Positions 12,139-31,970 of a stretch of DNA of 64,000 nt are shown in pieces (the first letter of the stretch is position 1; every line of letters begins with the position of its first letter). Under the pieces are notes generated by a model. It was not told where the DNA came from and made no database searches. It saw nothing but the letters and a program-made list of their open reading frames with translations. Location: NCBI GenBank assembly GCA_051530055.1, contig CM121341.1, positions 4,876,784 to 4,940,783 on the forward strand. Reading direction: 5' to 3'. The DNA is from Neoechinorhynchus agilis. Lineage: Eukaryota; Animalia; Acanthocephala. The translations under genes and the position numbers were made by a program.

Positions 12139-12609
12139 ATGCATTCCTCTGCAGAAATAGTGAACGGCGCAATCAGTGAATGGGACCACGCAAGTTATGC
12201 GGATTTAATAGAAGCAGCGCTCGAGCACAGTTTGACCGGCAGATTGCGGGTCAATGAAATCTACGAATGGATTCAGGACAATATCCCATATTTCCAACAA
12301 AGAACAGATAGCAAGTCGTGGAAAGGATCGATCAGGAATACACTGTCTTATTGTCAAAGATTCAGGAAAATTCCGGTTCGAGGAAGACCGAGGAAATCGT
12401 TTTGGGCGATCAATGATAACAGGACGAGTGGTCGACTGTGGCGACCAAAAGGACGACAACAAATTGTCGAGGAATCAAGGATTCAGCGTCCTCATCTGAA
12501 TGGAAATGCATCTCAAATACTTCAGCAGGACAATTCAAGAATCTGCGAACAGGAGAACTTAGCGGTTTCCGATCAAGTGATGCCAAACGGCCACCGAGAA
12601 TCAGAGTGA
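12139..12609 (+). CDS. Intronless forkhead (FoxO-like, divergent) protein, paralogue 1
   Basis: WDHASYADLIEAAL..RLRVNEIYEWIQDNIPYF..SWKGSIRNTLS..F.K.P..KSFWAIN matches the forkhead fold. SYADLI and IYEW..NIPYF are most like FoxO. Confidence 0.88.
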   Translation: MHSSAEIVNGAISEWDHASYADLIEAALEHSLTGRLRVNEIYEWIQDNIPYFQQRTDSKSWKGSIRNTLSYCQRFRKIPVRGRPRKSFWAINDNRTSGRLWRPKGRQQIVEESRIQRPHLNGNASQILQQDNSRICEQENLAVSDQVMPNGHRESE

Positions 12610-13150
12610 GTTTCCGTTGATCGGAAATGGTGATCTCAATACTTAAATAAGACGGATAGATGGAAGCCATCAGGGAGTTCAAGTTGAGGATCAAGACGTC
12701 TTTTTTTAATAAAGAAGGTGTCTATAATTTCTAATACAATTTCATTGAAAAACAAACTTGCCTTTGGGACTAAATTTTCTTAGTAGATCGGCAAATCATT
12801 CGCAAAAACAGAATCTATTGTTTCGTACTAAAATTAATTGCTTTAAATAAAATTAAAAAACAATTTTACGAAGAATTTCCTTCAGGAACATGACGATGAT
12901 CTTCAGTTTAATCGCCATCTCTAATCGATATCAGGCATTTTCTTTTAATAAAAGTTGCATTCGTAAAGCGTTAAGAATTTGTATTAAGTACAAAAGAAGA
13001 AATTATTAAGACGTTATTTACCGAAGTTTTAATCGAGTTCATGTTTTTTATTGTTCTTTAAGGTCTTTTTTTCTAAAGAAAGAAGTTTTTCTGTGTTTAG
13101 AGAGTAGATCTTTTATTATTTATACTGGTTTTGTACTTTCACGATCATCC

Positions 13151-13260
13151 TGCGACAAAATATCTCGCTCGCAGTACAACGAGGCGATGCCGCTGGCGTG
13201 ATAGCGACAGCCGAGGAAGGAGAGAAGCTAAGATTTTACGAACGGTGGTGATTGTACGTT
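13151..13260 (+). mobile_element. 110-bp 3' terminal fragment of the CRE-like retrotransposon
   Basis: Matches 31871-31970 (RQNISLAVQRG-coding end through gattgtacgtt). Confidence 0.85.
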
Positions 13261-13719
13261 CTGAAATAACATTTTTGTCCTAAGCTACGTGAATCCTTCG
13301 AATTTTTAATCTTAACTCGCAATGGCAAATTTAGATTCAATCATCGCTACGTAGTTTTTGTATCTTAATAAAAATAAAATCTTCACATTTTTCTGCTGTT
13401 TCACAGGTCGTTTTTAATAAATAATGAAATAAACAGAAAATCGTTTTTCATACACTTTCAAACATTCCATTCCAGATCTTTTGCTGATATTATGATTTGA
13501 ATATTTAAAAAGATGTGGACGGATTCAGGGGTGCAATAAAGCATCAAACGAAGGAATTTTAGACCTTTAGAACAATCTCCTTTTTTATGAATTAGTATCG
13601 ACGTTTTTTTCCGCAACGTTAATGAAAATATATTTCTGAGCGATCTCAAGAACAATTTCACCGATCAAAGGAATTTAAAGAAATTTTGAATAAATAAGAA
13701 AACATTATTTTAAAGACGC

Positions 13720-28419: not shown

Positions 28420-29219
28420 TCAAAAATCTTTACTCAAATGATTGTCGTCAAAATACGGACAAGGATTGTTCCGGAACAAAACGATCTCCTGCGGCATCGT
28501 CTTCTTCAATAAATGAGGCCACTTATATTTGACCAATTTATCAATTTGGTAGTAAGTTCGAAAGAGCAGGTAGTAGAACGGATAGCTTAACCGATCGATA
28601 GTTAATATTACTGGTCTCTGATTCAAATCTACTGAGTAGACTGTGTGATTTCGACATTCTCGGGAAATTATATAGTCCACTGAAAAGCAAACTTCCACGA
28701 GTATTTGAATGCACTGTTTAAGAAATAATCGTAAAGCATAGCCGCACAAATCAAAATTTTTAGACGTATCGGTCACACTTTCCACCACCACCGTAAAATC
28801 CATCTTAAACCTTCGATAAGTTCGAATTGCGACTGTCTTATTTCCGTCTGTCTAGTTGAAATTATAAATGGCACAAATATTACAAGGGCATAAAACATAT
28901 CGTTTTTTCTCTTTTACAATGCACTGGGATAGAACGCTCAGGTAATAGAAACGCATTTAGGACACGTTGACAGATTTTACTTTTATCTACTAAAATACTT
29001 TTGAGAAGCTTCACATTTCAATCCAAAGCTCTGAGCAATCTTAACCTTTCCCTTTAAAAAATTAACCTTCGATTGAATAGATAATCGGCTATCGATGATC
29101 ACCAATCCGTCCGTCTGTGATCCCTCATTGCTTCGTTTGTCAATCTTAGTTTGAGACGCCAAGCGAAACGCTCGACAATATAAGTACGTTTTGTTCCAGC
29201 ATTCATCTTGGTTAAGCAA
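28420..29219 (-). CDS. Hypothetical protein (two ORFs, possibly one gene)
   Basis: 127-aa and 78-aa same-strand ORFs in AT-rich DNA. No motif recognised. Confidence 0.35.
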
Positions 29220-29489
29220 ATTGAAAGTAATTTTGTTTCAGTCCACTGATGGTATAAACAGAAATATTCTAAAAGGTTTTACCTTCTGTATTCATAAGCA
29301 TTAAAGCTCATAAAAATGGATCGTAAAATACTAATTGTTTCGAATTGATTCGAAAGTTGATTTTGTTTTCAAAATGAAATAAAGAATCAAATGCACGATA
29401 CTAAAAAACCGCAAATTGGTGCAAAGCACCACAAAGAATTATCTTTTTAGTATAATAACGTTCTTTTATAAAATTGACGGAAATCTTAA

Positions 29490-31970
29490 AGAATTGAAGC
29501 CAAATTGCCACCTCCACCACCGACTGCACCGATGCCGCCTCGCGATCCCTGACTGAACGTGTTTCTTCGAAGCTTGCGGACGGAGATGTTCGGGGGCTGT
29601 TCGGTTATTGTCATCCTCCGACAGTTTTGCAGAAGGAGACAACGCGACACTGTAAATACTCCAGCAGCGATCGAGAACAGTTTGACCAGAAGATTGCGGG
29701 TCAATGAAATCTACGAATGGATTCAGGAGAATATCCCATATTTCCAACGAAGAACAGATACCAAGTCATGGAAAGGATCAATCAGGAATACACTATCTTA
29801 TTGTCGAAGATTCAGGAAAATTCCTGTTCGAGAAAGACCCAGGAAATCTTTTTGGACGATCAATGATAGCAGGACGAGTGGTCGACTGTGGCGACCAAAA
29901 GGACGACGGCAAATTGTCGAGGAATTAAGGATTCAGCGTCCTCATCTGAATGGAAATGTATCTCAAGTAGTTCAACCGAACAATTCAAGAATCTACGAAC
30001 AGGAGAACATAGCGGTTTCCGATCAAGTGATGGCAAACGGCCACCGAGAATCAGAGTGAGTTTCCGTTGATCACAGAGAAAACCGGGCAGGAACTTCGCC
30101 CAGTCCAACTGGGCTGCTGCACATCCTGCGGGGCAGAAGCTATTGTCCACTCGCTCCGAAACTTTGCTACGAGAAGCTCAGAGCCGTGCGTGATTTTTAA
30201 GTGCGATTTTCGGAACGCCTTTAACTCTCTCAATAGAGAAATCATGTTTTGCGCTATTAGGGATCACGCACCATAAGCCTTCCAGTATTTTCTCAATGCC
30301 TACAAACCGGGACTCCTTTGCTTTTCGAAAACCACCTGATGAATACCAACAAGTATCAAAATAATATCGCGTGATCAAATACTCCTCGCTCGATGGGCAT
30401 CAATATATTTTCATCCCGATCGCGGTGCTCGCTCGATGGGCATCAAGATCCATCATCCACGTCCGAAAGAGGAGTGCAGCAAGGATATCCGCTCGGTCCA
30501 ATCACATTCTCCCTAACAGTAAATCCAATAGCGCATTCTCTCCATTTCAGCTTCAACGCTTGGTACTTGGTTGACGCTACGATCGAAGGTGAACCCTCCT
30601 TTGAACTGCGCGATTTGGAGACGCTGATTAGCGAGACCTCGAGAATGGGCATTGAGCTCAATGCTGGAAAGCTTGAGCTGCTAGTATTAAATATCGAAGA
30701 CGCCGCCAAAGTCAAGGAGCTAATGGATGGGTTCGAGGCCGTAGCTCCAGGCCTGAAACTCGTGACTCCAGAGCAACTCAGCCTCCTTGGTAGTTGCGTC
30801 TTTGATTCAAATGTAAAAGCTGAGATCGGTCATATCATACCGAAACTTTCGTTGCTGTGCGATAGGATGAGCGCTCGCTCGGCTCACGAAGCGTTATTTC
30901 TGCTAACGAACGCATTCTTTATCCCGAAATTGTTATATAAGGTCCGCACAGCAACATTCTTCAAACATAAGGAAGGATTGGCTAAGCACGACAACAAGGT
31001 GAGGGCTTGCCTCGAGCTAATTTTAAATGTCCAGCTCTCAGATGAGACATGGCGACAAGCTTCATTGCCTGTGTCATCTGGGGGATTGGACATTCGGGTG
31101 CTAGTAGAACTTGCCAGCCTTTCTTGGATCGTATGAGGGGAATCAGCCGATAGCGAAAATAATTCTGAGGGGAAAGTTTTGTCTTGACCAAGACTTTGTG
31201 GTGGCAGTTGAAGAATGGTGCCAGAAGACAGGCGCTAACCATACTCCCGTGAATGGCCTCAGACACTCGATCTGGGACAGACCTCTCGTCGCGAGAGCTC
31301 ACAGCTCTCTACTTTCCGGTTCTCGCGATGGGGTAGTTTCGACACGAGAATCGGGAGGCGAGGTTGGAGACTGTTCCTGTGGCATCCGTGGGAACTCTTC
31401 TCATTGATGAGGTAACGAGGATCGCAGTGTCCTTAAGGCTTGGTCTTTGGTTGATGCTTTCGGGCGGCACGGTCTCGTTTGCCGAAAGTCAGGAGGAAGG
31501 TTCTCACGCCATTCTGAAATCAACAGCGTAATTTCTCGGGCGTTGAGAACGGCGAACTTCCCCAACATCTTGGAACCCGCAAATCTTTGTCGACCTGGCG
31601 GAATTTTTGTCTTTCCGTGACTGGAGGGCAAATGCCTCCTCTGGGACGCCAGGTCCCTTGCCGTAAGCAACATTCCCTACTCTCTCGAAATCGCTGGAGG
31701 TGCAGCGGAAGGGAGGAAGGTACGAAAATATAGTTATTTAGCAAGGACCAACTATTTTGTCGTCTTCGGAGTAAAGTATGGAGCGCTTGGCAGCTCGGCA
31801 CTCACTCTGTTCCAAGATCTCTTCAAAAAATTGATAGAAACGACCGGCGACGCACGAGCAAGTTTATTCATGCGACAAAATATCTCGCTCGCAGTACAAC
31901 GAGGCAATGCTGCCAGCGTAGCCGAGGAAGGAGAGAAGCTAGATTTTGCGGACGGTGGTGATTGTACGTT
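29490..31970 (+). mobile_element. Decayed CRE-like (REL-type) non-LTR retrotransposon, interrupted by a forkhead fragment
   Basis: Pre-RT RVSSKLADGDVRG(A)VRLLSS at about 29555-29620. RT LRPVQLG..GAEAIVH, DFRNAFNS, GVQQGYPLGP and WYLVDATI. LPVSSGGL. REL region [25 protein letters not shown] ending RQNISLAVQRGNA. Confidence 0.88.
29586..30059 (+). CDS. Chimeric ORF: retrotransposon-derived N-terminus fused to a 5'-truncated FoxO-like domain (paralogue 3)
   Basis: Fox homology spans 29663-30072 and lacks the SYADLIE start of helix 1. The in-frame ATG at 29586 lies in CRE sequence. Confidence 0.65.
   Translation: MFGGCSVIVILRQFCRRRQRDTVNTPAAIENSLTRRLRVNEIYEWIQENIPYFQRRTDTKSWKGSIRNTLSYCRRFRKIPVRERPRKSFWTINDSRTSGRLWRPKGRRQIVEELRIQRPHLNGNVSQVVQPNNSRIYEQENIAVSDQVMANGHRESE

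Follow-up and report, generated by a model that had tools for sequence, protein, structure and literature searches.

Short FoxO-like genes with an altered recognition helix in a duplicating region of Neoechinorhynchus agilis

What becomes of a forkhead gene that has been cut down to little more than its DNA-binding domain, altered at both base-contacting residues and multiplied along a chromosome? The question is raised by a 64,000-nucleotide stretch of DNA (the window) from the acanthocephalan Neoechinorhynchus agilis (assembly GCA_051530055.1, contig CM121341.1, positions 4,876,784 to 4,940,783 of the forward strand; the public annotation was made with BRAKER). A six-frame search of the window returned exactly six open reading frames (ORFs) that encode the helix WKGSIRNTLS, all on the + strand and in agreement with the initial annotation of this DNA. 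They are best explained, with no more than even confidence, as members of a young, lineage-specific birth-and-death family of FoxO-derived, near-domain-only mini-genes with weakened or altered base recognition.

Helix 3 and forkhead identity of the short genes

Recognition helix: In all 14 distinct copies of the family, which were collected by cluster look-ups and by tblastn over ~190 kb of loci around annotated relatives, helix 3 reads WKG[SA]IR[NS]TLS. The motif N(S/A)IRH, described as conserved or invariant in forkhead proteins (PMC8501956, PMC12135187), was not found in any of them. Both base-contact positions are replaced, Asn by Gly and His by Asn or Ser, and the helix-3 Arg and Ser are retained. 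In forkhead helix 3 only Asn and His hydrogen-bond bases directly (PMC8501956), and the His has been described as invariant in FOX proteins (PMC12135187). Among the proteins compared, mostly the best 150 HMMER matches, 147 forkhead helices read W[KQR]NS[IV]RHNLS and the WKG form was limited to the short family of N. agilis; judged by this comparison, the family helix lies far outside chance variation. The same species also encodes three divergent, dispersed long FoxO-like genes of ~340 amino acids (aa), and these keep the normal N...H helix (WKNSIRHNLS in P0028/P0173, WKNAVRHNLT in P0105 and WKNSIRHNLS in P0193). The rewired helix proposed in the initial annotation was thereby confirmed as a feature of the short family and is not shared by the long FoxO-like genes of the worm; a possible refutation named at the outset, a canonical FoxO with this helix, thus did not materialise. 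Two of the long genes lie at L006:6001-7068 and L011:5001-6119; the third is represented by protein P0105.

Members in the window: Paralogue A (12139..12609, + strand) is an intact FoxO-like ORF of 156 aa, with the forkhead domain at about aa 14-100, a tail predicted to be disordered from about aa 96-101 to 156, and helix 3 (WKGSIRNTLS) encoded at positions 12319-12348; the public gene models are P0157 and P0158 (ACOME3_001019 and 001026). Its protein matches a hypothetical N. agilis protein at 99% identity, and loci around annotated relatives coincide exactly with the window where they overlap it. Paralogue B (22614..23084, + strand), likewise an intact ORF of 156 aa, differs from A at 12 residues. 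Sequence comparison placed three of these in the Pfam-matched domain (H30N, T33I, R35I) and nine outside it, as had been noted before, and gave a pairwise synonymous divergence (dS) of 0.085 and a non-synonymous divergence (dN) of 0.036. Paralogue C (29586..30059, + strand; ORF from 29559 or 29586) is annotated as a 157-aa protein (P0005) and is a 5′-truncated copy. It is homologous to A only from codon 26 (29663/29664) to just past the stop codon; unrelated sequence forms the N-terminus and takes the place of the start of helix 1, so that this helix is incomplete. The common length of 156 aa assigned earlier to the family holds for A and B but not for C. Exact second copies of A, B and C were located at 39930..40400, 50405..50875 and 57377..57850, all on the + strand.

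Class assignment: The Pfam Forkhead profile (PF00250, gathering score 27 bits) matched the three sequence types of the window with E values of 1e-19, 1.5e-18 and 7.9e-17 (70.8, 67.1 and 61.6 bits); an NCBIfam search of the family gave no matches. The best sequence matches in the PDB were Brugia DAF-16 and FOXO1/3/4 (E 1e-14 to 1e-20), followed by FOXA2 at 1e-10, which gives FoxO/DAF-16 a lead of 4-10 orders of magnitude over the next class. In a neighbour-joining (NJ) tree of forkhead domains the family was monophyletic (100% bootstrap) and grouped with FoxO at 78%, a support that is moderate because the domain is short and the branch long. An AlphaFold run with 6 near-identical sequences had given a predicted local distance difference test score (pLDDT) of 52; after addition of four FoxO-like sequences, the model built from the nine-sequence alignment reached a pLDDT of ~87-92 over about aa 20-90 and had the element order H1-S1-H2-H3-S2-S3. 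Its best Foldseek matches were structures of the FOXO1 DNA-binding domain (DBD), with template modelling (TM) scores of 0.77-0.86 and a root-mean-square deviation of 2.2-2.9 Å, and the top matches also included FOXA and FOXN DBDs. By profile and predicted fold, then, the family is a forkhead domain, and by similarity it is FoxO-derived; the FoxO-like identity suggested initially is supported by the PDB ranking, the tree and the fold match alike.

Departures from FoxO: Between PYF and W, that is, in the H2-H3 loop, the family has 8 residues, compared with 11 in FoxO and in the long paralogues of N. agilis. About 6 residues separate PYF from W in FoxA. The five-residue insertion that FoxO has in this loop would appear from the alignment to be partly retained. 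It is the loop that positions the helix-3 Asn (PMC12143875). The C-terminal transactivation region is absent, since the protein ends 56 aa past the domain in a tail that cannot be aligned to FoxO. The net charge of the domain is +8, the same as in canonical FoxO DBDs, and wing 1 is more basic (PVRGRPRKSFW in the family versus NEGxGKSSWW in FoxO). The long protein P0028 is 47% identical to the family over 86 aa, and the motifs NIPYF, SK.WK and FRKIP are common to the family and the long paralogues. P0028 was considered as the specific parent, but in the NJ tree its grouping with the family had a bootstrap of just 4%. The Akt-type motif RxRxx[S/T] was found in none of the family members. The Akt-independence claimed on this ground is near-trivial, because every regulatory region is absent and P0028 is also without the motif. 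As to the other long proteins, RKRENS follows the domain in P0105 and RVRNNS precedes it in P0193; to judge by these sequences, FoxO regulation may be unusual in N. agilis.

Intron loss: A phase-0 intron lies exactly at WK|N in the two long genes that were read (48 nt in P0028, 43 nt in P0193), and nematode daf-16 exons end at the same GWK point (models P0006 and P0014). In the short family this intron is absent and the frame runs straight across. Because P0028 and P0193 keep the intron and the family reads through, the founder of the family lost it; the description of the genes as intronless is correct for this ancestral intron. Retroposition is one possible route of this loss. In a check for a poly(A) remnant and target-site duplications, similarity among the copies continued on both sides beyond any A-rich tract, owing to DNA duplication. 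The Asn-to-Gly change affects all three bases of the codon (AAT to GGA) that directly follows the lost WK|N junction (12322-12327 compared with L006:6304-6360); at the three codons behind it the family matches P0028 exactly. The change may be a by-product of the intron-loss event.

Stop-codon donor: The stop codon of most copies coincides in part with a consensus splice donor, CAGA|GTGAGT (12603-12660 in A), and an AG follows 46 nt downstream, at the usual intron size of this genome. BRAKER splices this 46-nt intron in four models, each with an unrelated tail; in one of the spliced models, P0194, the gene is joined to a gag-like transposon ORF. A real second exon is unsupported: the spliced tails are 8-27 aa long and not conserved, and three copy types carry a mutated donor. 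The donor may be the relic of a retained exon-intron boundary.

Copy number, selection and alternative explanations

Family size: At least 19 instances of the family were counted, in two clusters on CM121341.1. Sixteen of them lie between 4.76 and 5.08 Mb (~330 kb), and three or more others, identical in protein sequence, near 2.7 Mb. Ten of the 14 distinct sequences are intact (156 aa; 151 aa in the P0004 type). Two are truncated but open, both of C-type, and two carry stop codons, namely a third C-type sequence and a full-length copy with a 33-nt in-frame deletion. The truncated C-type form also occurs at L001:16193 and L007:7303, the latter being the copy with the stop codon. No relative closer than ordinary FoxO domains was found among 1.84 billion cluster representatives, and on public data the family would be specific to the N. 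agilis lineage. The two earlier proposals of expansion and of lineage specificity were both sustained, the former by at least 14 distinct copies in the sample. Two annotated models were examined and rejected. The 360-aa forkhead gene beside the 2.7-Mb cluster, a candidate parent, proved to be a third copy of the P0004 type that had been spliced by the predictor to a gag-like ORF. P0160 is not a true BCCIP-forkhead fusion; its joining "exons" are upstream non-coding sequence that contains stops in most copies, and its frame is opened by a (TC)n length difference in that copy only.

Tandem repeat: The first tandem unit in the window spans 27,791 bp (10884..38674), and a head-to-tail repeat of it starts at 38675 and runs past the end of the window, differing only at 10889/10890. 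Positions 10884-36209 equal 38675-64000 save for these two junction bases (99.992% over the 25.3 kb compared). Because the unit is repeated identically away from the junction, the six ORFs amount to three independent sequences. The initial count of three paralogues per unit thus stands as a count of ORFs; the third is a 5′-truncated fragment, however, and the two units are identical.

A repeat this exact may stem from a very recent duplication or be an artefact of assembly. It is quite possible, if somewhat short of even odds, that hybrid assembly or gap closing created a spurious second unit and that the window truly holds three copies. The total lack of differences over 25.3 kb apart from the junction bases is in keeping with this, and so is the way in which the 46-Mb hybrid assembly was produced, from ~50 pooled worms by MaSuRCA with Hi-C scaffolding and TGS-GapCloser before annotation with BRAKER (PMC12690905). 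On the other side, the remaining duplications in the region vary continuously in age (identities of 88% to 99%), and three gene copies of the P0004 type, of which two are separated by 21.6 kb, encode the same protein; it is plausible, then, that the duplication is a very recent one. An artefact would bear on the copy count only. The family itself is real in either case, because its copies differ from one another.

Mode of spread: A and B share a core of ~1 kb (11763..12788 for A and 22238-23263 for B, + strand; 93.5% identity), which consists of 376 nt of upstream sequence, the ORF and 179 nt of downstream sequence. Flanking homology among the copies amounts to hundreds of bases at either end of the ORF; upstream it reaches further in other copies, in many of them into a BCCIP-like gene. 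The oldest recognisable repeat unit, of ~2.8 kb (L009), contains one FoxO-like and one BCCIP-like gene; larger blocks were copied later, and the perfect 27.8-kb repeat is the youngest event. A block comprising B, a retroelement and C (22238-30337) recurs in L001 at 96-99% identity. Because flanks and whole retroelement-containing blocks are common to the copies, the mode of spread in this transposon-rich region was segmental duplication at the DNA level. The same shared flanks and blocks rule out a separate retroposition of each copy.

Selection: Pairwise omega (dN/dS, Nei-Gojobori) had a mean of 0.59, with values of 0.25-0.5 among the core copies and 0.6-1.1 in comparisons with the older P0003 and P0004 types; for A versus P0002 Fisher's test gave p = 0.002. 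Parsimony reconstruction on the NJ tree of 11 full-length copies counted 92 non-synonymous, 40 synonymous and 1 nonsense substitution, which were set against a neutral expectation with kappa ~2. For the domain this gave an omega of 0.56 (p = 0.017), and one stop was observed where 7.4 were expected. The clearest signal came from indels: the 468 coding nt contain no small ones where 11.3 were expected, set against 14 in 579 flanking nt (P = 1e-5), and the coding indels that do occur, of 15 and 33 nt, are both in-frame. None of the 14 distinct copies has a frameshift, including seven that were met solely as bystanders, and start codon and length are conserved among the copies. The forkhead ORFs are also continuous beside retroelement genes that are broken into numerous short ORFs, a contrast to which the initial annotation had rightly drawn attention.

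Several points weigh against functional constraint and altered DNA recognition. Overall omega is 0.78 (p = 0.12) and that of the tail 1.39, variable sites are spread flatly over the codon positions (24:31:28), and four of the 14 distinct copies are truncated or carry stops. The loci were mostly reached through annotated intact proteins, so the scarcity of stops and frameshifts is partly a matter of ascertainment. The flanks, being AT-rich and repeat-rich, are more prone to indels than coding sequence, and the substitution counts are not independent because gene conversion has occurred among the copies (mosaic divergence). Both base-contact residues are replaced, exactly as in the engineered, DNA-binding-dead FoxO1, and by analogy with that protein the family domain might lack any useful DNA binding. 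No mention of forkhead or FoxO genes was found in the N. agilis genome paper or in a paper on reductions in rotiferan parasites. Weighed against these points, the data point to a purifying selection on the domain that is real but weak, with a neutral tail and continuing loss of some copies. The "some constraint" proposed at the outset thus finds moderate backing, in the avoidance of frameshifts and the domain omega, but not in the overall omega, the codon positions, the tail or the disrupted copies.

Proposed course of events: As we picture the birth-and-death family, its founder would have lost the WK|N intron that splits helix 3, together with everything outside the forkhead domain. It would also have gained Gly, Asn and Thr in place of the forkhead Asn, His and Asn, and lost three residues of the H2-H3 loop. 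Tandem and segmental DNA duplication would then have multiplied it, carried along with the BCCIP-like gene, a YscW-like gene and transposons. The intact product is predicted to be a folded winged-helix domain of charge +8 followed by a disordered tail of ~55 aa. Expression, DNA binding and cellular role are matters that we infer only. The proteins may be small constitutive nucleic-acid binders. Without the bidentate Asn contact, and with Asn in place of the His, their base recognition would be weaker or changed. Backbone-contacting residues and basic wings are kept, so association with nucleic acid would persist. Since they have neither an activation domain nor an Akt/14-3-3 switch, the proteins could only occupy sites or compete for them, and their role might be architectural or repressor-like. 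Copies would come and go by birth and death, with selection on the domain purifying but weak. With regard to the two exchanged residues, the mutation H122N in FOXC2 made binding to the forkhead motif ~6-fold weaker without abolishing it and removed its pH dependence (PMC12135187), and N208A/H212R is the standard DNA-binding-dead form of FoxO1 (PMC8970673).

Possible hitch-hiking relics: The ORFs may instead derive from a FoxO fragment or retrocopy that was dead on arrival in a duplicating region and was amplified passively, the frames being open merely because they are young and short. This is less likely, but it is a serious rival. The overall omega, the flat codon positions, the neutral tail and the biased sampling described above would all be expected of relics, and dS (~0.10) equals the divergence of the flanks (0.11-0.12). 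Truncated and stop-bearing copies have themselves been duplicated, adjoining truncated BCCIP-like genes and transposons were co-amplified, and both base-contact residues are lost. Passive amplification does not, however, account for the absence of frameshifts where small indels are common in the flanks, for the omega of the domain and of the core copies (with individual pairs significant), for the conserved start codon and length, or for the retention of fold-determining residues and positive charge in the domain.

Possible protein decoys: It is improbable, although in line with the loss of both base contacts, that the winged helix is kept without DNA binding as a protein-interaction surface, for example one that titrates partners of the long FoxO-like proteins or the factors that import them. 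DNA-binding-dead FoxO1 is itself used to probe non-DNA functions, the regulatory and activation regions are absent from the family, and selection on the domain is moderate. Yet the helix-3 Arg and Ser, the more basic wing 1 and the net charge of +8 have no obvious need in a protein-binding module, and no partner is known.

Possible new DNA specificity: KRAB zinc-finger arrays track transposons by birth-and-death diversification. A comparable pattern is suggested here because the family sits in a transposon-rich, fast-duplicating region, but we consider it a long shot that the copies form a new Fox subclass with its own DNA specificity, which would have arisen from a one-step intron loss that rewrote the first helix-3 codon and would be diversifying at the Asn/Ser position and in the tail by analogy with such arrays.

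The duplicating region and its neighbouring genes

Co-duplicated genes: Upstream of A lies a truncated BCCIP-like gene of 167 aa (10398..10901, + strand; Pfam PF13862, E 3.6e-10) that was co-duplicated with the FoxO-like genes. Further truncated BCCIP-like paralogues (167-210 aa) were co-amplified at L007:8245-8877, L009:10001-10318 and L004:11002-11319. A gene of 132 aa with a YscW-type domain (18486..18884, + strand; Pfam PF09619, E 9.6e-11) is situated between A and B and was duplicated with them. It has a signal-peptide-like start and a bacterial-type lipoprotein domain, and a paralogue is present at L002:698-1099; its occurrence in a worm chromosome may reflect an old horizontal acquisition.

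Transposons: A broken retroelement of the long terminal repeat (LTR) type occupies 23791..29244 (+ strand) between B and C, with its protease, reverse-transcriptase (RT), RNase H and integrase ORFs split. Duplication as a part of the B-C block explains its identity of 98.7-99.2% to the L001 copy. A search for a pair of LTRs belonging to this element found none. An RT fragment lies downstream of A (13826..14296, - strand; Pfam RVT_1, E 5e-14), and a weak RT-like ORF (30393..31136, + strand; RVT_1 E 7e-4, 19.7 bits, under the 29.6-bit cut-off) begins 0.3 kb past the 3′ end of the paralogue C homology. Carriage of the forkhead genes as transposon cargo was ruled out: the repeated unit has no constant termini and no LTR pair, and it carries host-type genes (BCCIP-like, YscW-like).

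Satellites: Satellite arrays with units of 149-156 bp and 103-109 bp occur twice, at 1180-4050 and 19772-20491. Positions 4051-5641 are 98-99% identical to 20724-22240, and the sequence upstream of B is therefore a copy of the left end of the window.

Comparison with known systems and significance

Canonical FoxO proteins: With canonical FoxO/DAF-16 the family shares the winged-helix fold, the domain start W-x-x-x-S-Y-A-D-L-I and, it appears, an H2-H3 loop longer than that of FoxA. It differs in its length of 156 aa and in being without Akt sites, an activation domain and the regions that hold localisation signals. Further differences are Gly in place of Asn and either Asn or Ser in place of His in helix 3, a loop three residues shorter, the missing WK|N intron and the many tandem copies. 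Compared with the long paralogues of the worm, which are few, dispersed, ~340 aa long and of the N...H type, the members are tandem, short and altered in the helix. Human FOXO1B and FOXO3B are processed pseudogenes and thus, like the family, intronless FoxO-derived copies; unlike it, each is a lone retrocopy of full length whose helix is normal, neither is known to have been amplified, and neither is limited to the domain. Engineered FoxO1 carries replacements at the same two helix-3 positions (N208A/H212R) and, in the delta-256 form (residues 1-256), has its C-terminal part missing (PMC8970673); the family differs from it in being natural and multi-copy and in having Asn or Ser, not Arg, in place of His.

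Other winged-helix proteins: Uncharacterised proteins of Schistocerca and Bemisia tabaci (P0007-P0012, P0021) contain 3-8 tandem forkhead domains with a degenerate helix 3, and in several of these domains His is replaced by Asn (IRNAL, VRNEL), as in the family. Because such arrays exist, lineage-specific degenerate forkhead expansions are not unique to N. agilis. The locust and whitefly arrays differ in being predicted multi-domain proteins that are not FoxO-like, and none of them is FoxO-derived or has been studied. The globular domain of linker histones H1/H5 is, like the family domain, a basic winged helix, and the histone binds DNA without base specificity (PMC8501956). Beyond the fold there is no sequence relationship between the two, and the analogy would be a functional one alone.

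Significance: In the acanthocephalan N. agilis, with its very reduced genome of 46 Mb, the FoxO class has diversified into three long paralogues and an array. The class is often represented by a single gene in invertebrates. If the genes of the array are unexpressed, they are no more than a neat case of a pseudogene amplified through segmental duplication. A family in which both invariant contacts are replaced, and which nevertheless avoids frameshifts and keeps its domain under some selection, would otherwise be a ready-made test case for the question whether a forkhead domain can evolve a different specificity or come to bind non-specifically, in the manner of a linker histone.

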